Counted from the first letter of the stretch, positions 3,089 to 53,800 are shown. The stretch: 64,000 nt of DNA from IMGVR_UViG_3300009158_000031:1-64000; one strand, 5' to 3'. Notes: generated from the letters alone by a model not told the origin. A program made the numbers and translations.

Positions 3089-3156
3089 ATGTTAATAACT
3101 TTCCGAAAATAAATGTCAAAAAAGTTTTTTATTCCACAAAAAAGTATTATATTTGT
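3089..3156 (+). promoter_or_regulatory. Bacteroidota-type promoter, near-identical to 21473-21540
   Basis: TGTTAATAAC...TTTTTTATTCCACAAAAAAGTATTATATTTGT, with TAnnTTTG at 3148-3155. Confidence 0.8.
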
Positions 3157-3176
3157 ATATACAAAATAATCAAATA

Positions 3177-7520: not shown

Positions 7521-7555
7521 TGACGAGGAGTAATCATTTGGTTACTCCTTTGTCA
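7521..7555 (+). other. Intergenic stem-loop (weak terminator or processing site)
   Basis: TGACGAGGAGTAATC-ATTT-GGTTACTCCTTTGTCA inverted repeat. Confidence 0.55.
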
Positions 7556-20699: not shown

Positions 20700-20713
20700 C
20701 ATTTAAGTGGAAG

Positions 20714-21149
20714 TGGAGCTGGAGGGAATCGAACCCTCGTCTTGTTCAGCTAATACTAAGAATTCATTTACAGGCTTAGTTTGGTTTATGACACCAACAA
20801 ACTTTTGTGCATTTCGTTTTTCTTGTTGACTTAATGCTCGGTCAAGTTTACTCTTCGGTATAAGCCGAATTTCACAGAACAATTAACAGCGATCTTAATG
20901 GGTTACTGATTGTTCTCGGATGGTACTACTAACCCTTTTTCCCGGTGTGCACATTTTTTTAATATCAGTAAGTGCGACTGATTGGTTAGGCAGCGATAGC
21001 TACTTCACCACCAACGAATGCCATAGCATCTTCGAAGGTAAAAGTTGACGTATTGTCAGTTATTGTTTTGATAGGTAATTTAAGTGTTTCCATCTAACAC
21101 TGCCTGCATTCAAAGAACTACGACTGCCAATCGATGCCTGGTCAGCCCC
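20714..21149 (-). ncRNA. ssrA: tmRNA
   Basis: 5' GGGGCTG pairs with 3' CAGCTCC-A, giving the G3:U Ala identity. T-arm GAGGGTTCGATTCCCTC. Internal tag frame 21057-20986 reads DNTSTFTFEDAMAFVGGEVAIAA*. Confidence 0.95.
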
Positions 21150-21472: not shown

Positions 21473-21540
21473 TTGTTAACAAGTTTCCTAAAATAAATGT
21501 TAAAATATTTTTTTATTCCACAAAAAAGTATTATATTTGT
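21473..21540 (+). promoter_or_regulatory. Bacteroidota-type promoter, copy of 3089-3156
   Basis: 32 identical bp with 3125-3156; TAnnTTTG at 21532-21539. Confidence 0.8.
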
Positions 21541-21562
21541 TATAACCAATTAAATAAATTAT

Positions 21563-28496: not shown

Positions 28497-30293
28497 ATGG
28501 CATTTTCAGCTAGATCCGCAAAATATAAAGATGGAGCACTTAATAGATTTGTAAAGACTAATTTATTTTTTGAAACAAATCCATATATTCTATTTCAGGA
28601 TCCTACATATCTAGGATTCAAACTATTCTTTTTGGTTAATCAACCGGATAGTAAGTTATTATCAGATGAGCCTTTGCCTAATACCGCAATGTCATACTTG
28701 TATAATATTGGAGATACCGCTAGAATGCATTATCTTCAAAAATTCGTACAACATTTAGTTGCTATTAATCAACAAACTCCTTGGTTCTTTCAATCAATTG
28801 AAGGTTTAGCAGAGGCATGGAAACATGGTTTTCAAGAAGCAGATTTTAAACCTAAATTAGGTGATGATAGAAAAATTTCTATTAAATGTTTGGAAAGTAT
28901 AGATCTTCGCATGACTGCATTAATAGATCTTTATCGTAAAGCATGTTTTGATTGGCCAAATAGAAGAGAAGTAGTTCCCAAGAATTTAAGACAATTTACG
29001 ATGTATATTTATTGTTATGAGAATCGTACTATAAATGTTAAAGGTCAACCTGGCTCTAATTCCCTATCATCTCTTAAAGAATATGCCGCATTGCCTGAGG
29101 TTAATCAAAGACAAATAGATCAAAATAAAATTTTATTAGGTTTACCATTAAGTAAAGGTGGTGGAGCAAAACCTATTCCATCTGCTACCGAAATTACAGC
29201 CGGTGTACAAAGTATTATTGGTATAGGAGGAGGAGAAGAGGATGATGGTTTTGATAATGATTCTCAGTTTGCAAATACCATCAATGATAATATTAATAGA
29301 GTAATGTTTAAATTTGATCTTTGTGAATGGTTACCTGACGAGAGCGGGGTTATTGGTGCTAAAATTAATAACATAACTGGTGAAGCGGCTGATCAAACTC
29401 TAGCATTCTCATATAAAACCGTATATGAAGAAAATGTTTATAATATGTTTTCCGGAATTAGTGTTACCGATCTAAATTATATTCTAGATCAATCATCATT
29501 AGATAATGCTGATAAAACATTAACCGGATTAAGATCTAAATTTACTGAAGGTGGTGGATTTGGTTTACAATCCATTACAAATGGAAATTTTAATGCACTT
29601 ACGCCTTTTGCATCTATGGCTGCTGATAGATTAACTGAAGCAATTTCTTCTAAAGCTAAAGGTCTTCTATTAGGTAATATATTTGGATTTTCTCCAGCAA
29701 ATGTTGCTGGTGCTGCACAATCAATACTTACTGGAGATCCATCCGCGATGGTTCAAGGAGTAACACAATTAGCTAATGCTGGTGGTGGTGCATCTATAAA
29801 AAATGCCACAAATAAAATTCAAGGAGCACCAAACGTATTCGATTCAATTACTGGAGCATTAGGCGGTATCGTCGATAATGGTGATCTAGGAAACATATTT
29901 AATGATAGATCTGCTTCATTGGCAAATGATAATGGACCAGATGCTAAATCTCAAGGAACGGGTAATCCTACGGCTTCATTGGCAAACGATAATGGACCGG
30001 ATGCTAAATCACAAGGAACGGGTAATTCAACAGCCTCTTTAACAAATAATAATAGTTCTGGTGCTAAATCACAGGGAAAAGGCAATGATCAATCTTCTTT
30101 ATCGAATGATAATGGTTCAGATGCTAAATCCCAAGGAACAGGTAATTCAACTGCATCATTATCTAACAATCCTAGCTCTGGTGCTAAAACTCAAGGTTCA
30201 GGTAATCCAACTGCTTCTTTAGCAAATGATAATGGACCAGATGCTAAATCACAAGGAACAGGTAATGATCGAGCTTCATTGTCTAATGGATAA
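28497..30293 (+). CDS. Tail-tube-fold baseplate protein (gp54-like) with C-terminal 20-aa repeats
   Basis: Genomic context, a tube-like N-terminal half (CLESIDLRM) and a repeat tail. Confidence 0.45.
   Translation: MAFSARSAKYKDGALNRFVKTNLFFETNPYILFQDPTYLGFKLFFLVNQPDSKLLSDEPLPNTAMSYLYNIGDTARMHYLQKFVQHLVAINQQTPWFFQSIEGLAEAWKHGFQEADFKPKLGDDRKISIKCLESIDLRMTALIDLYRKACFDWPNRREVVPKNLRQFTMYIYCYENRTINVKGQPGSNSLSSLKEYAALPEVNQRQIDQNKILLGLPLSKGGGAKPIPSATEITAGVQSIIGIGGGEEDDGFDNDSQFANTINDNINRVMFKFDLCEWLPDESGVIGAKINNITGEAADQTLAFSYKTVYEENVYNMFSGISVTDLNYILDQSSLDNADKTLTGLRSKFTEGGGFGLQSITNGNFNALTPFASMAADRLTEAISSKAKGLLLGNIFGFSPANVAGAAQSILTGDPSAMVQGVTQLANAGGGASIKNATNKIQGAPNVFDSITGALGGIVDNGDLGNIFNDRSASLANDNGPDAKSQGTGNPTASLANDNGPDAKSQGTGNSTASLTNNNSSGAKSQGKGNDQSSLSNDNGSDAKSQGTGNSTASLSNNPSSGAKTQGSGNPTASLANDNGPDAKSQGTGNDRASLSNG
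29913..30290 (+). repeat. 60-bp coding tandem repeat, six full copies plus a partial one (ASLANDNGPDAKSQGTGNxT)
   Basis: Successive 60-nt lines align, with synonymous divergence. Confidence 0.9.
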
Positions 30294-30315: not shown

Positions 30316-30993
30316 ATGGCAATAAGAGACTTTTCAAAAGACGATTTACGAAACACCTCATGGTTAGGTGAAGTGGTAGATATTGCTGATCCTCAAAAAA
30401 TTGGTCGCATCAAAGTTAAAGTATTTGGTAAATTCGACGAATTAACTAATGATGCTATTCCATGGGCTTATCCAGGAAATAATATTTCTGCCGGAAGTGC
30501 GGATGGTGGATCTTTCTTTTCGGTTCCTAAAATGGGATCTATAGTTTCTATTAAATTTGATAATGGAAATATCTATTACCCTGAATATTTTTTCAATCAG
30601 CATTTATCACAAGATGCACGTAAAGAAATTGAGAATTCTTATGAAAACGCTCATATAATAGTTTATGATACTGTTACTGATGGAAAACTTAAAATCTTCT
30701 TTACTCAAGAAAAGGGACTTATGCTAGATTATAAAGAGACTCAAATTAACATCAAACCAGACAAATCTATTGTGATAAAAGCGGAGAATGTTATAATCGA
30801 TCAAGCAAAATCAATTGAATTAGGAAAAGGTGCAACGGATCCAGTAATTTTAGGAAATGCTTTCTTGACTCTTTTTAATGCACATACTCATTTAGGTAAT
30901 CTAGGAGCTCCTACATCACCACCGACCTCACCAATGACTCCGGCTGCTCATCTTAGTGGTAAAGGATCTACTCCACAAACTACCGTAAAATAA
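30316..30993 (+). CDS. Baseplate central spike (gp5/gpV-like, no lysozyme domain)
   Basis: OB-fold WLGEVVDIADPQKIGRIKVKV...IPWAYP...VPKMGS and apex metal motif FNAHTH. Confidence 0.85.
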   Translation: MAIRDFSKDDLRNTSWLGEVVDIADPQKIGRIKVKVFGKFDELTNDAIPWAYPGNNISAGSADGGSFFSVPKMGSIVSIKFDNGNIYYPEYFFNQHLSQDARKEIENSYENAHIIVYDTVTDGKLKIFFTQEKGLMLDYKETQINIKPDKSIVIKAENVIIDQAKSIELGKGATDPVILGNAFLTLFNAHTHLGNLGAPTSPPTSPMTPAAHLSGKGSTPQTTVK

Positions 30994-31003
30994 TAAAAAG
31001 AAT

Positions 31004-31399
31004 ATGCCTTTAATCCCAATTGCAATAGAAACTCCTCTAGATACTGCGTTTAAAGCATCTAGAAATAAATTCAAAATATCTTCTAGAAAAGCCTTTCTTG
31101 ATGCAATGACAAAATTTAAAACAGAATCTGCAGCAGCAGCTGCAGAGAAAACAATTAATAAAGATGGAATTTTTGATACTGCAGTAGCAGCTGCATCTGA
31201 TGTTTTTATGAATGAGATGGATAACGCCTATGGCGATACATTTGAAGGTCTAGGTAAAATTATCGCTGCACAAGTAGACGCTTACATCAGAACAATGACT
31301 ATCATTGTTCCTCCAGGACAAGTTGTTCTTACTCCTTTTGCTCCATCCCCACTTCCTGGATCAACAACCGCACCTTCACCTCCAGCAATAATCTCATAG
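31004..31399 (+). CDS. Spike-adjacent hypothetical structural protein
   Basis: Genomic context. Confidence 0.55.
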   Translation: MPLIPIAIETPLDTAFKASRNKFKISSRKAFLDAMTKFKTESAAAAAEKTINKDGIFDTAVAAASDVFMNEMDNAYGDTFEGLGKIIAAQVDAYIRTMTIIVPPGQVVLTPFAPSPLPGSTTAPSPPAIIS

Positions 31400-31462
31400 A
31401 AACGAGAGATATATAATCTAATAATACAATAATCTATTTATATTCACTTAACAAACAAAAAA

Positions 31463-32632
31463 ATGACAGAACAAATCGAATCTTTAATGACTAAAAAAGT
31501 ATGGACCGACACAGATTGGGAAAACTATGAGTCAGAATCCTTTGGGAAACGAAGAATCAACAAAAAAATTAAACACACTCTAGGTGACACCTCAAAAGTC
31601 TTTTACAATGGGCCAGACGCTCAAAAGATTTATGATTTGTATATGGGATCTCTTTCAAATTTAAAAGAACCTAAAACTGGAGATGTTGTCCTTGCAACCG
31701 TTTTATCGGTTAATCAAGAAAAAAATCATGCTATTCTCTATGTAGGCTGGAGAGAAGATGCTATCCTAGATCTTAAAAAAGAATTAGCCGAGTACATTCC
31801 TAACATTAAAGTAGGAAATCAAATTGAGGTTATCATTGAGACTAAAGGTCAAAATGTGCCTATTACCGCATCTTATTCTAAAAACATTCAAGCCCTTAAG
31901 CGTAACGAAGTATTCGATGCTATTGGCAAAAATGTTGCTTATGCCGCTAAAGTTGAAGAACTTATTCATGGTGGTTACTTCTTAAACATTGATGGAGTTC
32001 GTTGTTTCATGCCAGGATCTCTTGGTGGAATGAACAAATTAGTTAACTTCGAATCTTTAATTGGCCAAACTATTTATGTAGTTCCCATCAATTACTCAAA
32101 AGAGAAAGATTATATCGTGGTTTCTCATCGCGAATATCTTAAAGCTCTGGTTCCTCAAGAAATTGAAAAACTTATCATTAGTCAAAAATACAATGGTTTC
32201 GTTACTGGAACTAGCCGACATGGAATATTCGTTGAATTTAATGGTTGCTTAACTGGATTAATTACCAAATCAGATATCGATGATATGAACCTGGTAAATT
32301 ACAACGAAGGTCGTATTAAACCAGGTGATCCAATTGAATTCTATTTAAAAGAAGTTCTCGATGATACAAAAATCATCCTTTCTTGTAAACCGGAAACTAT
32401 TATTAATGAATGGGACGGAATCGAAGATAAATACAAAGTGCCATCGATGGTAACTGGTAAAGTGAAGAGAATCGTGAAATACGGAATATTCGTTGAACTA
32501 GAACCTAAAATCGTAGGCTTATTACATAAATCACATCTTAATGAAGATATGCAATTTGAAGTTGGTCAAGATATCGATGTTAAAATCGTAAAGATCGACA
32601 AAGAATCCAAGAAAGTAGACTTTACTGTATAA
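31463..32632 (+). CDS. Ribosomal protein S1-like multi-S1-domain protein
   Basis: About four S1/OB repeats, including GGYFLNIDGVRCFMPGS, IVVSHRE, HGIFVEF...GLI and YGIFVELEPKIVGLLHKS. Confidence 0.85.
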   Translation: MTEQIESLMTKKVWTDTDWENYESESFGKRRINKKIKHTLGDTSKVFYNGPDAQKIYDLYMGSLSNLKEPKTGDVVLATVLSVNQEKNHAILYVGWREDAILDLKKELAEYIPNIKVGNQIEVIIETKGQNVPITASYSKNIQALKRNEVFDAIGKNVAYAAKVEELIHGGYFLNIDGVRCFMPGSLGGMNKLVNFESLIGQTIYVVPINYSKEKDYIVVSHREYLKALVPQEIEKLIISQKYNGFVTGTSRHGIFVEFNGCLTGLITKSDIDDMNLVNYNEGRIKPGDPIEFYLKEVLDDTKIILSCKPETIINEWDGIEDKYKVPSMVTGKVKRIVKYGIFVELEPKIVGLLHKSHLNEDMQFEVGQDIDVKIVKIDKESKKVDFTV

Positions 32633-32670: not shown

Positions 32671-34029
32671 ATGGATTATAACTCACTTAATTTTACACCT
32701 CTATTCGAAAAGAGCTTAGTAAGGGTTACTGCTGAATTTCACAGTGACAAGAGTAATAGTGCAGCACTTGAAACATTATCGAAGGATCTGAAGCGTAAGG
32801 TAACTCCTTCAGATCCTTCTTCTATGTCTTTCCAGTTGAAAAGAGATGAATCCGGAAAATTCACATTTTCTACTGGATTCTTGTTGTACCGAGATGCTCG
32901 GCTTACGTTAATAGATCTATTCAAATGGATGGAACGTAATTCAAAAACCGAAAGAACGGATAATCTTTATCTAGATCTTAAGTTTATTGATGTAATTTCA
33001 GGACCTTTCAAAGGAACTTTGTTTAATACATCTACAAAAATTGATTCAATTGATAAAATCAAATTCGCTTTAGGATTTGATGAAGATGCCGTGTATAAAG
33101 TTTTCCCATCTAGAAAGAATGGATTTAATTCTCAAACTATTCGAAATTTCGCACCTCAACAAAAGTTTTTAGTGAAAACTAAATACATAGATCCTACATC
33201 ATATGATATTCCAAACACTCTTAATAGTGGAGTAAACTTCGAAACTTTAACTGATGGATATGTTAGATTACAATATATTGGTGGAACTAAATATGAAGAA
33301 AAATCTAGTGAAATTCTTACAATCCTTAATCAATTCACGATCACTGCTTGGGATTCGGTTATTAATAAAACTTACACCAAAGACAATTTAGATAAATTTG
33401 TATCTATGTTATCAAGAACAAAAGGTGCAAGAGAAGCCTATTTAGATTATGATTTATTTCTTAAGAATTTTCCAAAAGTTAAATTTACGGTAGATCTATT
33501 AGGTGATAAGAAAATTCTTGAATCTTATTATGGAATTTTAAAAGATCGAGTATATGAGATATTCAGTAATATTACAATTGAAGGTGATTGCGATCTTAAT
33601 TATGATACTCTTCTTTGTACGTTTCAAATACGTTCAGCTAAATTTAGAGCTAACAAACTAGTTAAAATAGACTTTATTGATTGTGAAATTGCGAGTGGAT
33701 CTTTTGAAATGTGTGATTTTTATGATTGTCGATTAATTGATTCATCTTTAAATTATTGCAATTTATTTCTACATTCTATTGTTGATAGATCTAATATATT
33801 AGATTCCTTTGCAAATAGAACGGTTCAACTTAAAAATTGTGAAATTGATGGTATGAATACCGTTATTAATTGCGATGTTATTGGAGGACTAATTAAAAAA
33901 TGTAAAGTCGGTGAACATGCTAGCATTGCAAAAGATGTCGTTGTTATCGAATATTCACCAATCAAATCAGGGTATTTTGTTGCTGGTGATAGAGTAATTA
34001 TACCTACAAAAAAATTTAATACACTGTGA
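32671..34029 (+). CDS. Hypothetical late protein: possible degenerate amidoligase-like N-domain plus a beta-helix C-domain
   Basis: GVNF...YVRLQYIGGTKYE resembles phage amidoligase motifs; Cys/Ile periodic C-terminus; late motif at 32642. Confidence 0.4.
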   Translation: MDYNSLNFTPLFEKSLVRVTAEFHSDKSNSAALETLSKDLKRKVTPSDPSSMSFQLKRDESGKFTFSTGFLLYRDARLTLIDLFKWMERNSKTERTDNLYLDLKFIDVISGPFKGTLFNTSTKIDSIDKIKFALGFDEDAVYKVFPSRKNGFNSQTIRNFAPQQKFLVKTKYIDPTSYDIPNTLNSGVNFETLTDGYVRLQYIGGTKYEEKSSEILTILNQFTITAWDSVINKTYTKDNLDKFVSMLSRTKGAREAYLDYDLFLKNFPKVKFTVDLLGDKKILESYYGILKDRVYEIFSNITIEGDCDLNYDTLLCTFQIRSAKFRANKLVKIDFIDCEIASGSFEMCDFYDCRLIDSSLNYCNLFLHSIVDRSNILDSFANRTVQLKNCEIDGMNTVINCDVIGGLIKKCKVGEHASIAKDVVVIEYSPIKSGYFVAGDRVIIPTKKFNTL

Positions 34030-34811
34030 TAGACAATTGTAACGATCCAAATTCTCCGGCTGCAATAGCTTACGATCAATTCATATCGGATGTTCAACAA
34101 GAATTAAGTGTTGCTTGTGCTTTACCGTTCACAACACCAAGACCAGAAATTGAACGTATTATTAAGTATTCTGCTGATTGGTTCTATAAAAAATACGAAG
34201 ATGCGGTTGAGGAAAAATACTACATTATTCCTGTAACCTGGTTTAGTTTACCTCAATTTAAAAGAGAAAGATCTATAACTCTTCCTGATTGTGTTTTTTC
34301 CGTTTTCTCTGTTAAAAAGCTAAGAGAAGATTTTGGACGTAATATGACATTTGATGGTACTGCCGATTTTGGTATTGAACGTTTGTTCTTATCAGATTCT
34401 GTTTCATTAGGTCAAGGAACGGAAAACTTAATGTATTACACATTGAACATGTATTGGTTAGACGTTGCATCGCATATAATCAATCACACCATCAGTTTTA
34501 ATTATAACCGTAATACTCATAAATTATTCTTTCCTGGACAAACTCCGGATAGAGATTGTGTGTTACATACATATACTAAGCTACCAATTGATATGTTAAT
34601 GAGAGATGAATTATTCTTTCGTTATGTAGTAGCTAAATGTAAAATGCAATTATCTAGAGTAATTGGAACATTTGACTTTAATCTTCCTGGAGGAATAAAA
34701 ATTAATTTCGATTTGATTCGAGGTGAAGGTGAAAGTGCTCTAGAAAAGATTGAAGAAGAAATCAAATCCGAAGAAGGAATGGATTTTTTCTTTACATCTG
34801 GAGGATCTTAA
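34026..34811 (+). CDS. Neck / head-tail adaptor (T4 gp13-like)
   Basis: C-terminal RYVVAKCKMQLSRVIGTFDFNLPGGIKINFD resembles gp13 (LPGGV). Confidence 0.7.
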   Translation: MIDNCNDPNSPAAIAYDQFISDVQQELSVACALPFTTPRPEIERIIKYSADWFYKKYEDAVEEKYYIIPVTWFSLPQFKRERSITLPDCVFSVFSVKKLREDFGRNMTFDGTADFGIERLFLSDSVSLGQGTENLMYYTLNMYWLDVASHIINHTISFNYNRNTHKLFFPGQTPDRDCVLHTYTKLPIDMLMRDELFFRYVVAKCKMQLSRVIGTFDFNLPGGIKINFDLIRGEGESALEKIEEEIKSEEGMDFFFTSGGS

Positions 34812-35267: not shown

Positions 35268-37043
35268 ATGGCAAAGCTTAACAAGATATTCACACCCAAT
35301 AGGATTGGATACCAACAACTTATTAATGATACATACCTTTACCTGATAGATACTTACTCTCAGGCACAAACTGTATTTTCTAAGGCTTCGCCTTATGGAC
35401 AATTACTTGATGTAATTAATAACTTCTCTCAGCTATTCTTCTTATATTTAGAAGATGCGATAGTGGAAAATAACATATTAACTGCACAGAAACAAAAATC
35501 TATTTATGGATTATCCCGATTAGTTGGGCACAATCCAACTAGAGCACTTTCTGCACAAGGAACTATTCGAGTTAAAATGAAACCTGGTGCTCAATCTGAT
35601 GTTAATGCGTCTTACCTTTTATTTCTTAATAAGAGTAAATTAAATTGCATAAATAATGGATTAGATTATTTTGTCCAAATGGGTAATGCTCTAGGTAATA
35701 CTAAAATAGATTCAAACAATATTGGATTTACTAGTTTTAAATTAATTCAAGGTATATTAGATACGCAAACCGCTATATCTAATGGAGATCCTCTACAAAC
35801 TTATAATTTCCAAACCGATAGACCTATAGAAAACGATATGGTTTATGTTTTTGTTAATGGAGAACCTTTTGATATTAAAGACTCTCTATACGATATGACT
35901 AGAGATCAAAAGCAATGTATGGTTAAAACTGGTGTTGCCGGTGGTATTGACGTTATTTTTGGAAATGAAGATTATGGATACATTCCTCCTTTTGGTAATA
36001 AAATTATGGTTGAATATGTAAAAACTGATGGTTTTCAAGGAAATATTTTTGGAAAAGGTAATTCAATACAATTCAAATGGGCAGATCCTGCATATACTAA
36101 TACCGGAGAAGAAATTGATATTAATGAATTTTTTATAACAGAAATAGAAAAACCTCTTATTTTAGGTGCAGATGAAGAACCGGTAGAATTAACAAAACTA
36201 ATTGCTCCTAAAACTTCTAGATCTTTTGTCCTAGCAAATCCAGACAATTACGTTAATTTACTTTCAAGATTTAATTATTCATATGTGGATGCATATACTA
36301 CAAAAGATGATGGATTCGTTGCAGATGACAATGTGATTTATTTATTTTTGCTACCAGATATTTCTAGAAGATTATCCAAAAATGCAGATTATTTTACAAC
36401 AGATATCAAAAACTTCTATTTAGATACAGATGAAAAAGATGCAATTATTTCATATATTAATCAAAGTGGAAGACAGATAATTTCAACAGAATTAAGTGTT
36501 GTTGATCCGGTTATTAAAAAATATGCGGTAAATGTTTTTCTTAGAGTATTTGATACGGTAGATACAACAACGATTAAAAATGACGTTATCAATCAAATAA
36601 CAAATTACTTAATTAATGTTACTCGAAGAGACAGAGTTCCTAAATCGGATTTGGTTGCTATTATTGAGGCAATTAACGGAGTAGATTCAGTAGATGTAAC
36701 TTTCGTTTCTCAAGAAAATGAAGATGCAATTATTGATGGATTTTATTATAGAGTAGAAAAGACCTCTTCTATAGTTAGATCATTAACAACCGAGACTTTA
36801 AAGAAAATAACGGTTGCACCTGGTCAAAATCCCAATTTAGGATTAGACGAATTTGGTGATATTGTTATCGAACAAAATGAAGTACCTATTATTAGAGGTG
36901 GATGGTATGATCGAAATAATAATTTCTATGAAGAAGGATTAAGTGAAAGAGATTTCTCTTCGGTTAACGTCATCATAAAAAGTGTAATTCCGGAAACTCT
37001 ATCTACTAGAATAACCATGAAAAATAAAGATGCCATTAAATAA
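35268..37043 (+). CDS. Baseplate wedge protein (gp6/baseplate J-like)
   Basis: TAQKQKSIYGLSRLVGHNP, VIFGNEDYGYIP, GADEEP and AINGVDSV. Confidence 0.85.
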   Translation: MAKLNKIFTPNRIGYQQLINDTYLYLIDTYSQAQTVFSKASPYGQLLDVINNFSQLFFLYLEDAIVENNILTAQKQKSIYGLSRLVGHNPTRALSAQGTIRVKMKPGAQSDVNASYLLFLNKSKLNCINNGLDYFVQMGNALGNTKIDSNNIGFTSFKLIQGILDTQTAISNGDPLQTYNFQTDRPIENDMVYVFVNGEPFDIKDSLYDMTRDQKQCMVKTGVAGGIDVIFGNEDYGYIPPFGNKIMVEYVKTDGFQGNIFGKGNSIQFKWADPAYTNTGEEIDINEFFITEIEKPLILGADEEPVELTKLIAPKTSRSFVLANPDNYVNLLSRFNYSYVDAYTTKDDGFVADDNVIYLFLLPDISRRLSKNADYFTTDIKNFYLDTDEKDAIISYINQSGRQIISTELSVVDPVIKKYAVNVFLRVFDTVDTTTIKNDVINQITNYLINVTRRDRVPKSDLVAIIEAINGVDSVDVTFVSQENEDAIIDGFYYRVEKTSSIVRSLTTETLKKITVAPGQNPNLGLDEFGDIVIEQNEVPIIRGGWYDRNNNFYEEGLSERDFSSVNVIIKSVIPETLSTRITMKNKDAIK

Positions 37044-44014: not shown

Positions 44015-47000
44015 ATGAGCGAAACTAAATATACATTAACTACCCTTCTTAGTGACCTACTGGCATTACAGAATAATGGTTACGAGATTATGAGTAAACT
44101 ATCTGAGGTAGTTTCTTCTAAATCAGATACCGTTGAAATACTTGTACTAGATCCTAGTGATCGTAGTAAAATGATGACTGTTAAAGTTCCATCATTCGGT
44201 GCAATGAAAGAGCAAATCTCTGCATTATCGAAAAATGTAGAAGCCCTTTCAGGTGTAGGAGAATCCGCATCTAATGTTCAATTATCTGATGGTTCATTTA
44301 GAAAAATTTTAGTTAGCGAACTTAAAAAAGAGGCTGCTAATATTCAAAAAGTTGCAAATCCAACTACTTTTAATACACGAGAAAATTGGTTCTTTGAATC
44401 TTTTCTTAATCCTTTAATGTATGTTTCATACGATCTAACTGATCAAGTTAAATTCAATACTGAAAATGTAGATGTTGCTCGTTACATCCTTAGTTTAGAT
44501 ACTTTTGAAAAAACTCAAGTATTCGAGCAAAGACTTAAAGGTAGATCAGATATTAGTTATGATGATTTTGTAAAGATTTTAATTGATTATAATATTGCCT
44601 ATTTCCTAGATAAAGACGTTATCACTGTTCCTCCTAGAGCAGTTAGATTCTATGGAGATTTTTCAGTTCTTAATGTTGAAGATTCTACAATATCTAATGT
44701 TGTAGATGGAGTAACTATACAAAACCGTCAAATCATTGTTCAACTAGATAATCTTTTCTATAATGATTCTAATTCTCCTTATTTAGCTACTCAATCTCTT
44801 AAATTAGGAGATTATCTAATAATCAAAGGTGGAAGAGGAAATACTCGATATGAAATTACATCAATCGATGGAGGTCAACGTAAAGTTGCTCTTAAATTAA
44901 TTGAAGGATTCGATCCAGTTTCAATTGGAGCTGGAGTTTTATCTTTTTATACAGAAGATGTTTCGACGATCAGCATTAATATTAATGTAGGATTCAATGA
45001 AAACTGTGTGGTATTCATTAAACCAATTGATCCAGAATCTAAATTAGAAGCTATCAAATGGTCTCCAGGATCTTCTTTCTATACAAATGAATTAACTATC
45101 GTAGATCAAGCTACAGGAAACTTAATATTCTTATCGGATTATTATAAGAATTCCGTAATTGACTTTGGTGCTTTTCTTTATTCAATGTCTAAAGAGAAAG
45201 TTCCACCTGCTATTTTCGGATTAGTTCCTGATGCTCCAAAACTTAATGCCGGAGATTTTAAAGTGGTACAAATCAATAATCATTTAACAGATACTTCACC
45301 GGCTGCTAAATTGAAAGGTCTTCAAGCAGATAAAATTCGTATTTCCGCTGATATATCTTCATTGGATGCATCTATTAATCAATTGAGATCCAAGATACAA
45401 ACCGTTAAATATACAACTACTCGTTTAAGAGATGTAGATGAGAATAAACTTAATGCGCTAATAACACAAAAAGATGCAGCAACTCAGCTATATGGTACTA
45501 CGGTTAATGAGATCGTTAAAATTGGAACAGATCCAAACTCTGATATTGTTCCTAAATACCGACTTAGAGGTTTCTTTCCAATACCACAACCTAAATTATC
45601 AGATAGAACAAACCCTCAACAAGTTGTTCAATTCAATATTCAATACCGATACTTACAGAAAAATGGAAGTGCTAATTCACCGCAACAAATTCCTTTTACT
45701 GATAACAACGGTCAACCTAGAACAGGAACTTTTTCTACATGGACAGAATACAAATCCGAAGTAAGAAAGAGAGCAGTGGATCCTACAAGCGGTTCTCAGA
45801 AATGGGTGGTTGAAGATGTTGAAAATCCTGATTATGTAAATATCAATCAAATAGATATTGCTATTCAAGCCGGAGAAGCCGTTGAATTTAAAGTTCAATC
45901 TTTATCTGAAGCTGGATGGCCAATATCGCCTTCAACTTCCGTTTATAGCGAAACTATTAAAGTTGATTTTCCTTCAGATTTAGAAGTAGATCAAGGATTA
46001 ACGAAGATAATCGAACAAGCAAAACAAGATAAAGTTAGAGTAGATCTAGAACTTGCTCTTATTCAAGATGGAGTTCCTCAACATATATCTACATCATTTA
46101 CTCAAGGAGAAAATTATTGGGCACATAACGCATTCGATATTGCTTCCGGATTCTTAACACCTGAAAATAATATTCTCTCATTATTTGATAAAATAAATGA
46201 TTTACAAACGCAAATACAAAATCTTGCTGCACTTATTACGGTTGCAAAAGGTGTATTAGTAGTTAAAGTTATTGAGGATGGTGGTACTGAATATAGTGTT
46301 GAAGCTAATAAAACGCTTAAGATTTTTGCTGGAAACTATAAAGATGAAGTTGCCGGATTAAACGTTAAGAAAGGCGTTATTATGACTAAGAATTATTATG
46401 TTCAAATTCAAAATGCCGATACATCTCCATTAGAAATGTATGCAAGAATTTGGGGTTCTAAATATCAAATTGCAAATGCATCTTATTCAGAAGGTTTTGG
46501 ATATTCTACAACGGATTCAGATTATAATACCGTTAGACGCTATGATTATGTTCCTTTAGGACTTTCAAATCCTGCAACCCTAGATGTTAATAGATATGGA
46601 ATTATCAATCGTCAACCAGAACAAAGTGCTCAAGTTAGAGGTCAATTTATTAATTCTCGTTTCCTAGCAATCGATGGAATTTCTAAATTATTTTCTAATG
46701 TTGGTGGTGCTACTTATGGAGTTGAACGTACTGACTTATTCTTACAATATGGAACTGGTGGTCTTCCATCAGCTACTACACAAGCAAATGCTCAATATGC
46801 CACTTCGTTAGATCAAATGGAATATTTTGCTGGAACTACCGCATTAAGTGCAATAACATCTTTAGCAAATGGACAGGCTGCCTCAGATTTTATTTGGAAA
46901 CCTACACCTACGGTAAATTCTAAATTTGTGGTTGGATCTACTTCATCTATTATTAATACATTCTATGATAGTGATATTCTAATTCACATTGACCATCCAT

Positions 47001-47743
47001 CAATTATTGATTGGCAAACTGCATGTGCTGGATCTACTGCAAATCTACTTAATATAACTAAAGGTACAATAAGAAATTCTCGTTTTGCTCCTGTTCAAGT
47101 TCCTAATTATGGATATGGAAGACAAAGTGCTCTTTATTTTAATGGTGCTTCTGCCGGTGCAATTGGTGCAACATATTCTAAGGTTGCCTTTGTTGAATAC
47201 GATCAATATTTATTAGGTCCTAAATCATGTGGATCTTATCTATTCCTTAATCCAAATACTCATGGAGATGTAGTGGTTGATGGTAGCGGATTCGATGCAG
47301 TTAAGACTGTGCAATTTGGTGGAGCTAATGCTATTAATATTCCCATCACTTTTCAATATCGAATGACTGATTATTTTGGATTTGGAACTTCCGGATTAGG
47401 AAAAATTGGAGGAAATCTAAATGCATCTCCGAATGCAAATGTTGAATATTCAAAAACGATTGGTATAGACATTTACACAAATCCCAAGGAAACTCAAAGG
47501 TTCTCATTTGATATTGAAATTACCGCTAGATATCGTTCTAATTCTATCGTAGGTTCTCTTTTACCAGTAACTACATTCGAATCCCAAATTAATACATTAA
47601 CTAATGTGGTTAAGAACATTAATCCTACAGTTACTCAAATTAAAGGAACTGGTATTAGTCAAGTATCGTCGGCTCCAGCTCCAAAGACTAAAGCTGGAAT
47701 TTCGTCTCTTAAGAATCTGATCAAATCTGCTAAAGGTGGTTAA
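44015..47743 (+). CDS. Large virion structural protein
   Basis: 1242 aa with coiled coils, in structural context. Confidence 0.6.
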   Translation: MSETKYTLTTLLSDLLALQNNGYEIMSKLSEVVSSKSDTVEILVLDPSDRSKMMTVKVPSFGAMKEQISALSKNVEALSGVGESASNVQLSDGSFRKILVSELKKEAANIQKVANPTTFNTRENWFFESFLNPLMYVSYDLTDQVKFNTENVDVARYILSLDTFEKTQVFEQRLKGRSDISYDDFVKILIDYNIAYFLDKDVITVPPRAVRFYGDFSVLNVEDSTISNVVDGVTIQNRQIIVQLDNLFYNDSNSPYLATQSLKLGDYLIIKGGRGNTRYEITSIDGGQRKVALKLIEGFDPVSIGAGVLSFYTEDVSTISININVGFNENCVVFIKPIDPESKLEAIKWSPGSSFYTNELTIVDQATGNLIFLSDYYKNSVIDFGAFLYSMSKEKVPPAIFGLVPDAPKLNAGDFKVVQINNHLTDTSPAAKLKGLQADKIRISADISSLDASINQLRSKIQTVKYTTTRLRDVDENKLNALITQKDAATQLYGTTVNEIVKIGTDPNSDIVPKYRLRGFFPIPQPKLSDRTNPQQVVQFNIQYRYLQKNGSANSPQQIPFTDNNGQPRTGTFSTWTEYKSEVRKRAVDPTSGSQKWVVEDVENPDYVNINQIDIAIQAGEAVEFKVQSLSEAGWPISPSTSVYSETIKVDFPSDLEVDQGLTKIIEQAKQDKVRVDLELALIQDGVPQHISTSFTQGENYWAHNAFDIASGFLTPENNILSLFDKINDLQTQIQNLAALITVAKGVLVVKVIEDGGTEYSVEANKTLKIFAGNYKDEVAGLNVKKGVIMTKNYYVQIQNADTSPLEMYARIWGSKYQIANASYSEGFGYSTTDSDYNTVRRYDYVPLGLSNPATLDVNRYGIINRQPEQSAQVRGQFINSRFLAIDGISKLFSNVGGATYGVERTDLFLQYGTGGLPSATTQANAQYATSLDQMEYFAGTTALSAITSLANGQAASDFIWKPTPTVNSKFVVGSTSSIINTFYDSDILIHIDHPSIIDWQTACAGSTANLLNITKGTIRNSRFAPVQVPNYGYGRQSALYFNGASAGAIGATYSKVAFVEYDQYLLGPKSCGSYLFLNPNTHGDVVVDGSGFDAVKTVQFGGANAINIPITFQYRMTDYFGFGTSGLGKIGGNLNASPNANVEYSKTIGIDIYTNPKETQRFSFDIEITARYRSNSIVGSLLPVTTFESQINTLTNVVKNINPTVTQIKGTGISQVSSAPAPKTKAGISSLKNLIKSAKGG

Positions 47744-47820: not shown

Positions 47821-50800
47821 ATGGCAAATAAGATACTAAAGAGAACCTCATTCGGTCTCATAAGAACTAATCCTAGATTATCAACTAACGTAAAAATAGT
47901 TGCAAGCTCTTCAGATGAACTTTTTCTGGAGAGTATAGACTCGAATCCAATTTTAAGTAGCTCTTTATATAAAGGGTATGGAGTACAAGGTTACTATTCA
48001 CAAGATCTTTTTAATTTTTTCAATCAAGGAAATGCAATTCCTAAAAATCTTCTTTACGAAGTATACGAAGAAGATGGAGCTATTTCAGTAAAAGATCGTT
48101 ATAAATTTCAAAGAGATTTCACATATGCTTTAGGATCTTATCCTAAAAATTCAAAGTTATATACCGAAGAATTTGCTGCATTTGCTCCTCTTTGGTTAGA
48201 ACGAGACAATATTCCTGACTATTTTATCATATTTAGAATGGATGGTCCAGTTACCAAGAATATCAATACTGCTGAATATTCTGGAATTGATAAAGATACT
48301 GATCCTATATTGGATAAACTTATTAAAAGTCCAGATCTATTTTTCTCTAATTATATTCAAAAGGCTAAAATCATTGCTCAATTTGATCTGACTGGTAACA
48401 CAAACGTTGGATCATATATTCGTCGACATGTCAATGATCCTAATTTCCCAGAAGCTCCTCTATACTTTTCGCCAGAAGAAGGAGATTTAACTTATTGGCA
48501 AGGAATATCTCTAGATGAAGGCGGATTCACTAGAAAATCAGAGCCAATTAATACTGAATATGTTTTACCAGACAAGACTATAATTGAATCTGAAGATTTT
48601 ATCACGTTTGGTTTTTCTAGAAATTCTATTGTTTGTGCAAATCTATTAAACATGGAATTTTTATTCGATGATACCGAGCAAGAAGATTACAAATTCTATC
48701 GTTACTTTGGTATGTACGTTAGTGAACAGGAATTAGGACAATTCACGATTGATCCAGATAGGCTATATGCCGATAGATTTGTTGAAAATACTCAATCACC
48801 AATTCCTATTCTTCCTAATGTAGGAGATCCAACATTAGCGGAAAATCAAATACAAACAAATCCAAAAGGTCTTAAAGTTTATCCTAGAATTATTACAGGT
48901 TCTACCGGAATTTATTCAGGTAGATTACTTACATGGGAAGAAACTCAAAAACCGAGGTTTGGTTATTTAAAAGATACCCTTGGTAATGTTTATTCAATAG
49001 ACAATAATTATAAATGGGATAGCGAATATCAAAATCCAGGAACAACGGCTAAAGGAGATACATATACCGATAGTTCATTCTTAAGAGTAAAAGATACTAC
49101 CGTCAATTGGGCAGCATTTGGCGGATTCCAAGAGCCTTTTAAGTATATTACCACTCAACAAAATGGATTGAATGGAAGTGCTAATTTTGCATTTGATGTA
49201 CTAAAAAAACCAAAAGGAAAGGATCAGATTAGAATTAAATATATCAATCCTACTAATTCAAAGGCATCTACTAAAATTACAACCGGTAATACCTTTAAAG
49301 CTTTAATAGATCAATATACAATTAGAGGAAATTCCAGTCTATCTGCCGGAACTAATGATGGAAATGAATATAGTACTTTAGGTACAACCGATCAAGTTGC
49401 TAGTTCAATAGCATTAGCTATTAATAACATAACATCATTAATTACAAGAGATCCTAGTAATTTCGGTGAAGAAATTTTATTTGAAGCGGTTTCGCAAAAA
49501 TCGACAGTAGTTGTTTATTATAAAAATACATCTGAAATTTTTAACAATATAGAATTTAGTATATTTGCTGACGTTCTTTATGCTGAAGATATACCTTATT
49601 CCAGTCCTTCCTCTTTATCTGAATGGAATCAAGAACAATATTTAGCATCTCCAATTTTTACATCAACCGGTGCCACTTATAATGCATCTCAAATGGGATT
49701 TGTTTATAAATATAAATTTGTAGGAGGAAATACGAAACCAGGTACTAGATTTATAATTGAAAAAGATTTTGTTGATAATTTCCTAGATCAAACCGATAAA
49801 ACTTATGTTAAAACCGATAAAGGATATTCTACAATAGTTCATGAATACTCGAATTATCTAGATTCTCCTCTTTATGAAGGAGCTAATATTGTTGGATTTA
49901 CCGGACTTGATAAATATTATGTTCTATCGATAACCGAGAAAACTCATTCATTAGAAATAGGAAGTGAAGGAAAGATACCTTTAAGAAAGCTAATAAAAAA
50001 TTCAGTTGGTTATCTTTCATTAATGCCTATTAGAGATTTTGATTTTGACTTCTTCAATACAGATTACAATAAAGATGGAGATGCTTCATTAGACAATCTA
50101 TTTGAATGGGAATTAGGTGAAGGAGTTTTAGGAGATGGTTATGTTGCCGGTTCTTATGCCGGAGCCACTTCGCTTTTAGTTACCACTAAAAATGCCTTCA
50201 CTAATCAAACTTTATATCCTATTCCAGTTGGTGCAAATTCACCTTCATTAAGAGTGGTATTCGCAAAAAGTCCTACTGGAGAAAAAGGTATGACCGGAGC
50301 TCTGCTTAATTTGCATGAAATATACACAACGGTAGATGGCGGAGATACTTGGAACATTTATCAATCTCTACCCGCTTTTGATTATATCGATTTAGATTGG
50401 GCAGAAAACGATATTTTTATGTCATCTTCATCGGAAGAATATCCTACTATTAGAAAATTTAGCGTTACTTCGACCGGTGCAAGTCAACTAGCAATTATAA
50501 AATTAATGGATTATCCAAATTTTGGAATGCGAACTTTATCGGCTATCAACGAAGATGAGGTTGTTTTTGCTGGAACTAGAACATATCCTGAACCAGCCGA
50601 ATATCCTGAATATTTTCCATATCAAAATCAGAATGAATTGTTCTTCTATAACAGACCTTATGGTAGATGGACTACGATAGGTGCAACCGCAATAGCTCCA
50701 ATAACCCGAGCAGATTTAGGTGCTGAAGGTATTCAAGGAGGAATTGGTCAATTTGCAAGCGGAGATCCACAAGCAACATCTTATCAATCTGCGTATATTG

Positions 50801-53800
50801 GCTCAAATTTTGGATTTAAACTTCAGGCAAATTTAGTCAATCCTTTTAATTTTTGTCAATTCGGAATACCGGGTAATACAGGAGGTGGAACTGCTGGAGA
50901 TATGCCACTTTGGAGTTGTGGTGACGGAAGATTTAAAGTTGGTCCAGATATCGTCGCATACAATGGATTAGGTGCATTACTTACTGCTCAAGATATGTCT
51001 GGTGGAGGTGCATCTGCTGAATGGGTATTTCAAAATATTTCGACTGGAGCTACTACTGTAGCAGCGTTTGGTATTACTGGATCTTATTCAGATCATTATA
51101 ATGTTATGGACGGAAAACCAGTAGGTGCCTTATCTTTCTTTAGTGTTGGAGGAGCTGGATCTAGCGCATCCGTATATTTGGGAAAAGACATGGTGCTCAG
51201 TAATTATTTAGTAAGTAATTATAATACAACTAGAAAATATGTTATCGGAAGAAATATGTGGAATCAAAATGATTTTGCTACTCAATTCGGTAATTCATTA
51301 AATTTAGTATCTGCAACCTTTCCAGAATTCGGAGGAATATTTACTGCAACTTGGAATCAGGGAGATGATCCTATCTATAATGCCTCATTTGATATGCCAG
51401 GACACTCAATTTACATACCTGAGCAAACTGGATGTGTTGCTGCAATTCCAACCGGTACAAACACCGATTCATCAATATGGGGCAAAGCGACGAATTTAGA
51501 TACTGGTTTAATTGGACCGGCAAATCTAACATTCGATTATCGACAAATGTATTGGGATACGATTCCAGCAAGTGCTCCAACTGCCGGATATGGTTATGGT
51601 TTACCTAAATTTGATGGAATTGATGGTGAATTATACCTTCAAACTGGATATGCCATAGATGCTATTCAATCGAATAATTTTACTTTTCGATCAATATATC
51701 ATGTATGGAAGTGGAGTGCTAGTCTAAGTCAATGGCGATGGGAAGATCGTACTCTTTATGATAATGAAATAGCGGTTAAAACGGTTACATTTGAAGATAA
51801 ACCTATTTGGTTTGGTGTAGCTCCTCTAGGAGGAATTGAGGCAGTAGAAGCTAGTGGCACTGGAAACTTAAATACTGGAGGAACTATTTTCTCATGGGAT
51901 GAAGATAGAGGAATTCAAGTTCTTTATTATTTTGGTGGAACTGCTACAGTTCAACCAAGAGGTTCTTTGATTGACGATCCAACAAACTCGGGTTTTCATC
52001 GACTTTTCGGTTGCGCAAGTGGAGGACCTTTTAGTCTTGATCTAGATGCCCTTTATTCAACTGCTCTTCCGGCAAATTTTATGTTTCCTAAAGATAATAC
52101 TGGACAATTCCAAGCTAACAACGGTTCGATGTTTACCACAACATCCACTTTTGGAAGTGGTATTTTAGGAGGAATTTCGATTGGATCTTCGGCAAATCCT
52201 CATAGATTACATGGAGTATCATCCGCTGGAGGAATTGGCGGACAAGGAGTTGTATGGAGCTATGATGCTAATTTACCAATTAATGTTAGTACTTCATATC
52301 AAGTAGAAGCTAATTTTAAAGGAGCTACAAATGGAGCTAATCCTCTTTATGCTCCATTCCAAGGTCCTGAAGGATTCGTTTATGGAGATGTTTATAGCGG
52401 ATCCGATTTTGGATTAGGAGCTCTTTATAAAATTGCTCCGATTGCTCCTACTGGACAGGTTTGGTATGGAAATTTTGACACTAATTATATTTCCGGTTTA
52501 ACTGGATCCGGTACTATATTTGAAGATTATGATGGAGAATCCGAATTCGTTTCGATATCTGCTACTAAATCTGCGCAATTCCATACTGTTGGTAATACGG
52601 TAGTTGCACTATCGAATTATTCAACTGGCCTTATAGGATCTGTAGGAGCTAGTGCTGGTCCCTGGATTTATGGAACTAAATTTATAGGTTCCACTTCGTT
52701 ATCCAATCAATATCAACCAATGGGACCTACTGGAGCCAGTGTTGGAGGTACTTCTGGTGGATACTTCTATTCATTTAATCGAGTAAAGAATTTCCCTTGG
52801 TTAGGATCCACTGCAAATCCGGATTATTATGTTGTAAGTGGACAATCCACATTCGCTAATACTTCTGGAGCAACTTCAATTGTAATATCTAGAGGAATTA
52901 CTGGATTCTCACCTATAACAGATTACGGTATAATTAAACCGATACCTACTAGTCTTAATTTAGGTTCTGGTCCAGCATACTCAACATCGGCACATGAAAA
53001 TGATTTTGGATTATTATCTTTATGGACCTTAACTCAAGGAGGAAATCTTCTAAATTCAGTTATCGGAACAACTTCAGTCAATGTGGCATGGGGAAGTATC
53101 ACTTTACCAGGAGCTACTAATACAAGTCCTTCATTTGGAGAAGATCTAGAAATATTCCCAGTAGATATTCCTGATGAAAATCCATTTGTTCAATGGTGGG
53201 CGCTTACCGAGGAATCTAGAAACAATGTTACCGAAGCCGTTGGTGCTGAATCTCCTTTTACCATCACTGGAGGATTCCAAAAACTTATTGGTTTATACAA
53301 TGAATATGATGATACGGCAGATGACATAACAAATGAATATGATCGTCTAAAAGAAAATGACAATCCTACACTTTCAGTTTATTCTAGAGTAGTTCCATTT
53401 ATAAACAAATGGGTTTATGATAATGAATCAACTGACGTTAGAGAAAATGGATATCGTCTAAATGTCGATCAAGCATTCGGTATGTTCAATTTTACGCCTT
53501 CATTTGATGAATATAATAGAAATCCCAAGCTATTTACTCATGAATGGTATTATCTACAAGAATATCCCAAGTATATGACATTCGATGAAAAGCGAAATTC
53601 ATTTTCATATTTCGATTCAGCAATTATTAATCCTACTGGACCTACTGGTGATTATGCTTCTTATACAGGAATAACCGGATCTTCCGGTGGTGGTTTATAT
53701 AGTATAGTCGATGATTATTTCGTTGATTATTTCACTAGAGAAACGGTGGATGGAAATCCAGTGCCTAGAGATTTTAGATATTCAATATTCAATGGTGGAA

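Follow-up and report, generated by a model that had tools for sequence, protein, structure and literature searches.

A conserved four-domain homologue of ribosomal protein S1, encoded between the spike and neck genes of a jumbo-phage lineage, with a possible role on the host ribosome

The stretch of DNA considered here, IMGVR_UViG_3300009158_000031:1-64000 (hereafter the window), covers the opening 64 kb of a linear IMG/VR virus record of 254,393 bp (CheckV, 83%). The 254 kb genome has a GC content of 33%, and its + strand holds 315 of the 317 open reading frames (ORFs). Within a cluster of tail, neck and baseplate genes in the window lies a gene whose product is, by sequence and profile comparison, a genuine shortened homologue of bacterial ribosomal protein S1 (bS1) comprising domains D1–D4. 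The gene and the parts of its protein are as follows, with positions counted from the first letter of the window.

31463–32632, + strand: bS1 homologue gene (P0001), an intact ORF of 389 amino acids (aa) with an ATG start
31463–31618, + strand: N-terminal extension (residues 1–52), carrying a basic loop and an F-D-W-x-x-F/Y motif whose W19 is invariant
31619–31657, + strand: pre-D1 helix (residues 53–65), with Q54 and Y57 invariant and Y60 near-invariant; equivalent to the N-terminal helix by which E. coli bS1 binds uS2
31685–31873, + strand: OB domain D1 (residues 75–137), with a W96-R97-E98-D99 loop in which R97 aligns with E. coli K43
31940–32125, + strand: OB domain D2 (residues 160–221), more conserved than any other domain, with Y172 and F182 aligned to F120 and F130 of the OB2 mRNA pocket in E. 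coli
32186–32383, + strand: S1 domain D3 (residues 242–307), PF00575 at 39.6 bits, with F256 invariant
32444–32626, + strand: S1 domain D4 (residues 328–388), a canonical S1 RNA-binding domain by PF00575 (52 bits)

An earlier reading of the sequence alone (the sequence-only reading) had described a shortened protein of about four S1 domains, and both a collinear alignment and a structural model bear this out. The Pfam S1 model PF00575 scores 97.2 bits on the whole protein against a gathering threshold of 22; when the protein is cut into pieces, D4 and D3 each exceed the threshold, D2 gives a weak match below it (18.4 bits), and D1 is not detected by this model. Phage residues ~62–387 align collinearly with D1–D4 in the NCBIfam RpsA models, in E. 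coli bS1 (557 aa) and in the 591 aa bS1 of PDB 9zcd, the HMMER alignment placing phage residues 62–386/387 on E. coli bS1 11–343; the full-length collinear match has E values of 1e-45 to 1e-47. By the RpsA models, the alignment and an AlphaFold model alike, the protein ends after D4, and D5–D6 are absent. The AlphaFold model, for which an alignment of 32 family sequences served as input (pLDDT 81.6), contains four beta-barrels (75–137, 160–221, 242–307 and 328–388) and a helix at 53–65, with the N-terminal extension as its lower-confidence part. Its top Foldseek match is E. coli bS1 (E 1e-23), and the D1–D2 pair superposes on ribosome-bound bS1 D1–D2 with TM scores of 0.70–0.74 at 3.6–4.2 Å. 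PDB entries 28jw/9tvu, titled 'Ribosomal protein S1 homologue', were set aside; they represent a chlororibosome protein and no phage protein.

These matches bear on the simplest alternative to a translational role, namely that the gene encodes a structural tail or baseplate OB-fold protein merely resembling S1. Its location would suit such a protein, as would the occurrence of OB folds among spike and hub proteins. Against it stand the collinear match to bS1 over the full length, the canonical D4 and a Foldseek search topped by bS1, with tail proteins absent among its hits, which together make this reading extremely improbable.

Relative to bacterial bS1, including that of F. johnsoniae, the phage protein likewise has collinear D1–D4, an aromatic-faced pre-D1 helix, a basic tip on D1 loop 2, an OB2 pocket and a canonical D4, whose residues Y340 and H355 (both near-invariant) and F343 (invariant) fall on the Y/F/H positions of the E. 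coli domain in the alignment. It differs in lacking D5–D6, in its overall identity of ~20–25%, in an N-terminal extension (~50 residues) that includes a ~22-residue basic insertion, and in a 4-residue deletion into which E. coli K117 falls. The four-domain S1 of Firmicutes (PRK06676, 391 positions) is similar in length and domain number, and the phage protein aligns with it over 9–344; however, the score of 137 bits against 368 marks it as a non-member, the phage host appears to belong to the Bacteroidota, and the phage protein possesses a uS2-type N-terminal helix. Within the phage family, D2 has a mean column identity of 0.83, and its 'MPGS' sequence is present in all 78 full-length relatives. 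The gene has an overall GC content equal to that of the genome, with a third-position GC content (GC3) of 0.27 versus 0.14–0.22 in its neighbors.

The S1 gene is flanked by recognizable structural genes.

30316–30993, + strand: spike/baseplate-hub OB-domain protein (Phage_base_V, PF04717; phrog_37871/430), upstream of the S1 gene
31004–31399, + strand: small ORF of 131 aa between the spike and S1 genes, with a small ORF in the same place in relatives
32671–34029, + strand: ORF of 452 aa next to the S1 gene downstream, beginning 38 nucleotides (nt) past it, with weak pentapeptide-repeat hits
34026–34811, + strand: T4 gp13-like neck/head–tail adaptor gene (PF26809; phrog_211)
35268–37043, + strand: gp6-like baseplate wedge gene (phrog_219)

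A gp25-like ORF follows the neck gene, upstream of the wedge gene. The placement between spike and neck genes in a baseplate cluster, as proposed in the sequence-only reading, is thus confirmed by PF04717, PF26809 and the phrog assignments. The S1 gene and the 452 aa gene are probably co-transcribed, as the 38 nt gap between them holds no terminator. The 452 aa ORF diverges much faster than S1, with a median identity to the window of 27% versus 44%.

This arrangement recurs across a large family. More than 1000 proteins belong to it, and 453 IMG/VR contigs encode an S1 relative. Synteny was counted in the best 80 loci with enough flanking sequence, which reach down to 38% identity: the spike gene precedes S1 in 68 of 71 loci, and the 452 aa and neck genes follow it in 73 of 73. 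The same gene order is found in identical contigs from freshwater metagenomes and in members at 52–57% identity on contigs of up to 308 kb. S1 is the most conserved gene of the spike–neck cluster, and its identity varies in step with that of the wedge and neck genes (Spearman 0.87–0.93, a descriptive value given that the loci are related). A dN/dS of 0.14 against an 87%-identical relative indicates, at the level of sequence, that the gene is subject to purifying selection. Among ~185,000 species genomes searched, one relative was found. In view of the fixed position, the co-divergence with wedge and neck genes, and the single species-genome hit, sequence comparison therefore identifies S1 as an old, phage-restricted, vertically inherited core gene of a ~250 kb jumbo-phage lineage, and disfavors recent capture of a host rpsA. 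The sole bacterial-genome hit is a 35%-identical S1 on the 43 kb rumen contig ONCO01000010.1 of a metagenome-assembled genome, 'Erysipelotrichaceae bacterium RUG187', which is probably a phage contig mis-binned with the bacterium. A megablast search of the 10 kb region against phage records returned zero matches. Cultured Tenacibaculum relatives of the wedge gene are without S1; Tenacibaculum phage PTm1 has only the p122–wedge–p1361 part of the cluster in common, and S1 is absent there.

Turning to expression, the gap upstream of the S1 gene contains a promoter-like element followed by a leader.

31408–31416, + strand: late-class promoter-like element GATATATAA, 55 nt before the S1 ATG
31417–31462, + strand: S1 leader, A/U-rich and unstructured, without a Shine–Dalgarno (SD)-like tetramer

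The core sequence GATATATA occupies 31408–31415. Its count is unenriched in the window (3, versus 8.4 expected by shuffling), and in the 254 kb genome it occurs 11 times on the + strand and never on the − strand (~17 expected, P 6e-8). Of these copies, 9/11 are intergenic, in a genome of which the intergenic fraction is only 7.5% (P ~1e-8). Printing every intergenic region of the genome yielded three promoter classes.

Class 1: a ~60 nt cassette ending in TATATTTG, in 21–28 copies, before the NAD ligase gene and many small ORFs
Class 2: CATATAAW, before the genes for DNA polymerase, UvsX, DnaB, clamp loader, exonuclease and thymidylate kinase
Class 3: RATATATAA (motif [GA]ATATATA[ACT]), 34 on the + strand and 3 on the − strand, 25 of them within 80 nt upstream of a + strand start

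Class 3 elements precede the genes for the head maturation protease and tail sheath, the tail-fibre operon and the S1 gene, and the element is kept in the same pre-S1 gap in two relatives (L011 and L012). Since this motif precedes structural genes and another precedes replication genes, the assignment of the S1 element as late-type is supported by association, and the late-type promoter placed at 31408 by the sequence-only reading stands on both motif placement and the company it keeps. Sigma-70-type promoters and intrinsic terminators predicted in the 28–38 kb interval are at or below chance. With no terminator-like signal above chance between them and S1, the neck and baseplate genes are probably served by the S1 promoter as well.

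Some further details of the promoter classes may be recorded. The class 1 cassette (TTGTTAATAACTTT ... TTTTTTTATTCCACAAAAAAGTATTATATTTGTATATAC) is found in the window at ~800–860, 3090–3176 and 21490–21562 and at ~20 further genome sites (for example, 111–119 kb, 143–158 kb and 196–250 kb), nearly all on the + strand and mostly ahead of ORFs of 60–130 aa. Its ending fits TAnnTTTG, the Bacteroidota sigma-A −7 consensus, and these cassettes are probably early promoters read by host RNA polymerase. CATATAAW occurs 64 times on the + strand and 20 times on the − strand, lying 10–30 nt before replication and nucleotide-metabolism genes (for example, at 7554, 79509, 86212, 87738, 111531 and 119630). 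The spike gene at 30316 is an exception in the late region, carrying CATATAAW 16 nt upstream.

The S1 leader exemplifies a genome-wide pattern. The minimum free energy of 31416–31500 is 0 kcal/mol, and 200 of 200 shuffled sequences fold at least as well. Across the genome, an SD-like tetramer at −18 to −4 is absent from 95% of 315 starts, versus 89% of internal ATG controls; the 20 nt upstream of starts contain 53% A and 7% G, versus 35% and 18% at the controls, and A peaks at −11 to −13 and at −2/−3. The A-rich starts lacking SD sequences that the sequence-only reading noted are a pattern seen across the genome. In Bacteroidia, the anti-SD sequence is sequestered and initiation relies on unstructured, A-rich leaders and on bS1, and the phage start regions match this pattern. 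Cultured relatives of the wedge gene infect Tenacibaculum, Chryseobacterium, Flavobacterium and Prevotella; together with the TAnnTTTG promoters, these hosts indicate, on sequence grounds, that the phage infects a member of the Bacteroidota. The leader of E. coli rpsA is hairpin-rich and autoregulated; the phage gene differs from bacterial rpsA in its unstructured leader and its location in a tail cluster.

How might the phage protein engage the ribosome? In E. coli bS1, Phe5 and Phe9 stack on uS2 and Lys43 enters the uS2 zinc pocket, and within OB2, Lys117, Phe120 and Phe130 hold mRNA at the exit channel. These residues correspond to the following positions in the phage protein.

E. coli F9: phage Y60, near-invariant in the family (HMMER alignment)
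E. coli F5: phage I56 (HMMER alignment)
E. coli K43: phage R97, inside the W-R-E-D block, invariant in the close family
E. coli F120: phage Y172, near-invariant
E. coli F130: phage F182, invariant

The aromatic mRNA-pocket positions of OB2 are thus retained in phage D2. When phage residues 1–160 were modelled in complex with F. johnsoniae uS2, three runs gave a score of 0.75, versus 0.00 for the best of 3 controls; the 0.75 mark is reached by 51 of 78 solved complexes and by 2 of 108 mismatched pairs. Between runs, at least 64% of contacts are shared, and the partner pLDDT is 69 or higher; the models place phage helix 56–67 (contact residues 56, 59, 60, 63, 64 and 67) and residues 97–99 against uS2 204–209 and 14–19, in the known geometry. 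Because bS1–uS2 complexes have already been solved, the model shows a likeness to the known interface, short of proving binding.

Taking these lines together, we consider it somewhat probable that the phage S1 docks on the host 30S subunit at the bS1 site and aids translation of SD-less phage mRNAs late in infection. The gene, first behind a late-class promoter, would be expressed late in a unit running into the neck and baseplate genes, and its product would occupy the bS1 site of host 30S subunits, anchored on uS2 through the pre-D1 helix and D1 loop and perhaps on neighboring proteins through the N-terminal extension. The D2 aromatic pocket (Y172, F182) and D3–D4 would then hold unstructured, A-rich, SD-less leaders, such that phage S1 would top up or replace host bS1 during bulk synthesis of structural proteins. 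Ribosome binding and stimulation of initiation are inferred here from the sequence. The late-expressed bS21 encoded in the structural region of other phages, discussed below, is an analogue that counts in favor of this proposal.

Several observations weigh against it. Every RpsA equivalog cut-off is missed (TIGR00717, 131.9 versus 577 bits), the best ratio being that of PRK06676 (136.8 versus a cut-off of 368), and in the HMMER alignment D3 is missing the conserved His of canonical S1 domains. The complex score may reflect the model's memory of solved bS1–uS2 complexes. The predicted uS2 contact set shows no conservation beyond that of the remaining D1 residues (0.63 versus 0.65, p = 0.58). 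Of the 78 relatives, only 22 have the WRED/WRES loop and 47 the helix motif. Early, middle and late leaders are similarly A-rich (A at −11 to −13: 0.71, 0.55 and 0.65) and equally SD-less, with no late-specific signal among them. The bias toward late AU-rich mRNAs that the sequence-only reading had suggested is accordingly not supported, and since late leaders resemble early and middle ones, phage or late mRNAs gain no evident selective advantage. There is also no obvious reason for a phage to need a bS1 of its own.

The lack of preferential conservation in the uS2-contact set, and a WRED loop that is not family-wide, would be expected if D1–D2 bound a phage partner instead of uS2 and the protein acted off the ribosome, as an RNA chaperone, an mRNA protector or a cofactor of a phage enzyme. 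D2 exceeds the other domains in conservation, and it is D1–D2 of bS1 that bind the enzyme in Q-beta replicase (PDB 4q7j and 4r71 are among the matches); extraribosomal roles of bS1 in phage biology are documented for T4 RegB as well as Q-beta replicase, and Al-Shayeb et al. (PMC7162821) left the choice open for huge phages. However, the uS2-anchor helix, the basic loop residue and the D1–D2 geometry are all retained, and the fixed neighbors are tail and neck genes, with no linked gene for a nuclease or replicase partner. We regard an off-ribosome role as possible but unlikely.

The same docking features, combined with the absence of D5–D6, could instead describe a competitive blocker, in which the truncated protein takes the uS2 site, fails host mRNAs and so shuts off host translation. 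Such a plug would have no need of the D2 pocket and the D3–D4 RNA-binding residues, which are nevertheless strongly conserved in a gene subject to purifying selection, and it would be made late, when host shut-off is usually complete. Moreover, phage leaders are like ordinary Bacteroidia leaders, so blocking would hurt the phage too. We consider this reading very unlikely.

A proposal that goes further than docking at the bS1 site arises from the N-terminal extension. An F-D/N-W-x-x-F/Y motif with an invariant Trp (FDW/FNW) is present near the N-terminus of 56 of 78 full-length relatives, and in F. johnsoniae bS1 the helix FLANFNWHNF contacts uS8. The resemblance between the phage FDW motif and this helix, a comparison of a 10-residue peptide, is a lead; a phmmer search of residues 1–110 against the PDB gave a chance YoeB hit alone (E 0.6) and did not confirm it. 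Possibly, the phage specifies a 'late ribosome', in which S1 displaces host bS1 by means of the uS2 anchor and a helix imitating the Bacteroidia bS1 uS8 anchor, and in which altered D2–D4 favor phage messages, or virion carriage achieves this from the first minute of infection. We judge this distinctly unlikely; if true, a virus would here be replacing the principal subunit for mRNA recruitment in a phylum without SD pairing.

Comparison with published systems places the more modest docking proposal in context. Possible rpS1 genes of huge phages were described by Al-Shayeb et al. 2020 (PMC7162821), who noted that they accompany genes lacking SD sites and suggested that they act in initiation 'on or off the ribosome'; the statement in the sequence-only reading that S1 genes occur in such phages is thus correct. 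Among the huge phages, the 462 kb phage LR756500 carries a 42%-identical, syntenic copy, and homologues occur in LR756500–504, LR745206 and Lak phages, with copies other than that of LR756500 at 25–33% identity. They share with the present genome the pairing of a multi-S1-domain gene with an SD-less genome, whereas the family described here belongs to a ~250 kb lineage and has a fixed spike–neck position and a defined late promoter class. Chen et al. 2022 (PMC9723584) described bS21, with late expression, within a conserved structural region of large freshwater Bacteroidetes phages. Like S1, bS21 is an initiation-related ribosomal protein of the mRNA-exit/platform region encoded among structural genes; it is, however, a different protein, and one whose expression was measured. 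The Microcystis jumbo phage PhiMa05 also encodes a bS1 homologue (PMC13157829), which has further ribosomal protein genes as neighbors and seems to be a recent acquisition from a Vampirovibrio-like host, but it is only 21% identical and the present family is old, phage-restricted and solitary. The general idea of a phage rpS1 was thus already published in 2020. What is new here is the size and coherence of the family, its fixed spike–neck position, its late promoter class, the mapped anchor and pocket residues, and its independence of tmRNA and SmpB.

The genomic setting of these other copies bears on another alternative, that S1 is a virion-carried translation factor, packaged and delivered with the DNA so as to act on the first transcripts of the next infection. 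An invariant place in the spike–neck–baseplate cluster, a late promoter and co-divergence with structural genes would all be expected of such a protein. However, the S1 gene of the 735 kb phage has a topoisomerase II gene as its neighbor, and that of a Lak phage lies beside one for tRNA-His guanylyltransferase; neither context is structural. T4-like tail gene clusters, for their part, also contain non-structural genes. The early genes of the present phage have host-type promoters and ordinary leaders, and do not evidently need a special early factor. Virion carriage is, in our estimation, a poor prospect.

The sequence-only reading had also suggested that S1 works with the tmRNA as a translation-takeover module. 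The tmRNA exists, by its Rfam match, and SmpB is encoded as well, so the phage carries both parts of the trans-translation system.

20711–21149, − strand: tmRNA, full-length, Rfam 85.6 bits, missed by ARAGORN
116243–116647 of the 254 kb genome, + strand: SmpB gene (E 5e-48)

The genes are unlinked: S1 lies 10 kb from the tmRNA, on the opposite strand, and 84 kb from SmpB. Of 9 long relatives with S1, 4 have tmRNA and 3 have SmpB, and a complete 256 kb genome with terminal repeats encodes S1 but neither of the other two; of five huge phages, the tmRNA passes in 2 and SmpB is found in 4. Because S1 persists in relatives lacking tmRNA and SmpB, an obligate S1/tmRNA/SmpB module is not supported by these genomes. 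A functional contact between S1 and tmRNA has been reported for E. coli, and by analogy a contact between phage S1 and tmRNA may be conceivable.

Some features of these genes are recorded separately. The tmRNA is on the − strand of a genome with nearly all its ORFs on the other, and its tag, (A)DNTSTFTFEDAMAFVGGEVAIAA, is unusually long with a canonical AIAA end. Two IMG/VR records (294 kb, and 129 kb labelled as a provirus) have tmRNA and SmpB at identical coordinates; they are accordingly the same phage, and the 'provirus' label of the shorter record looks doubtful. Genes for S21, IF3, deformylase and release factors were not found in the 254 kb genome, and only two tRNA genes are present (Leu-TAG and Met-CAT, 240522–241014), far fewer than in the S1-carrying huge phages.

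As initiation in Bacteroidia depends on A-rich leaders and bS1, a phage-made bS1 would touch the step at which mRNAs are selected. The family is large, well conserved and compact (389 aa), and F. johnsoniae provides an in vitro initiation system; it therefore offers a practical way of testing the long-standing claim that ribosomal proteins of phages enter host ribosomes and redirect them. A by-product of the analysis is a three-class promoter map for an uncultured jumbo-phage lineage.

Finally, three further ORFs deserve mention. Ahead of the spike gene lies an ORF of 598 aa (28497–30293, + strand), for which no family match was found; it ends in about six tandem 18-residue repeats of the form ASL[A/S]NDNGPDAKSQGTGN-like. 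Further downstream, in the tail region, is an ORF of 2655 aa (47821–55788, + strand), adjoined by an ORF of 1242 aa (44015–47743) that matches phrog_29329 and is shared with the huge phages of 634–642 kb.

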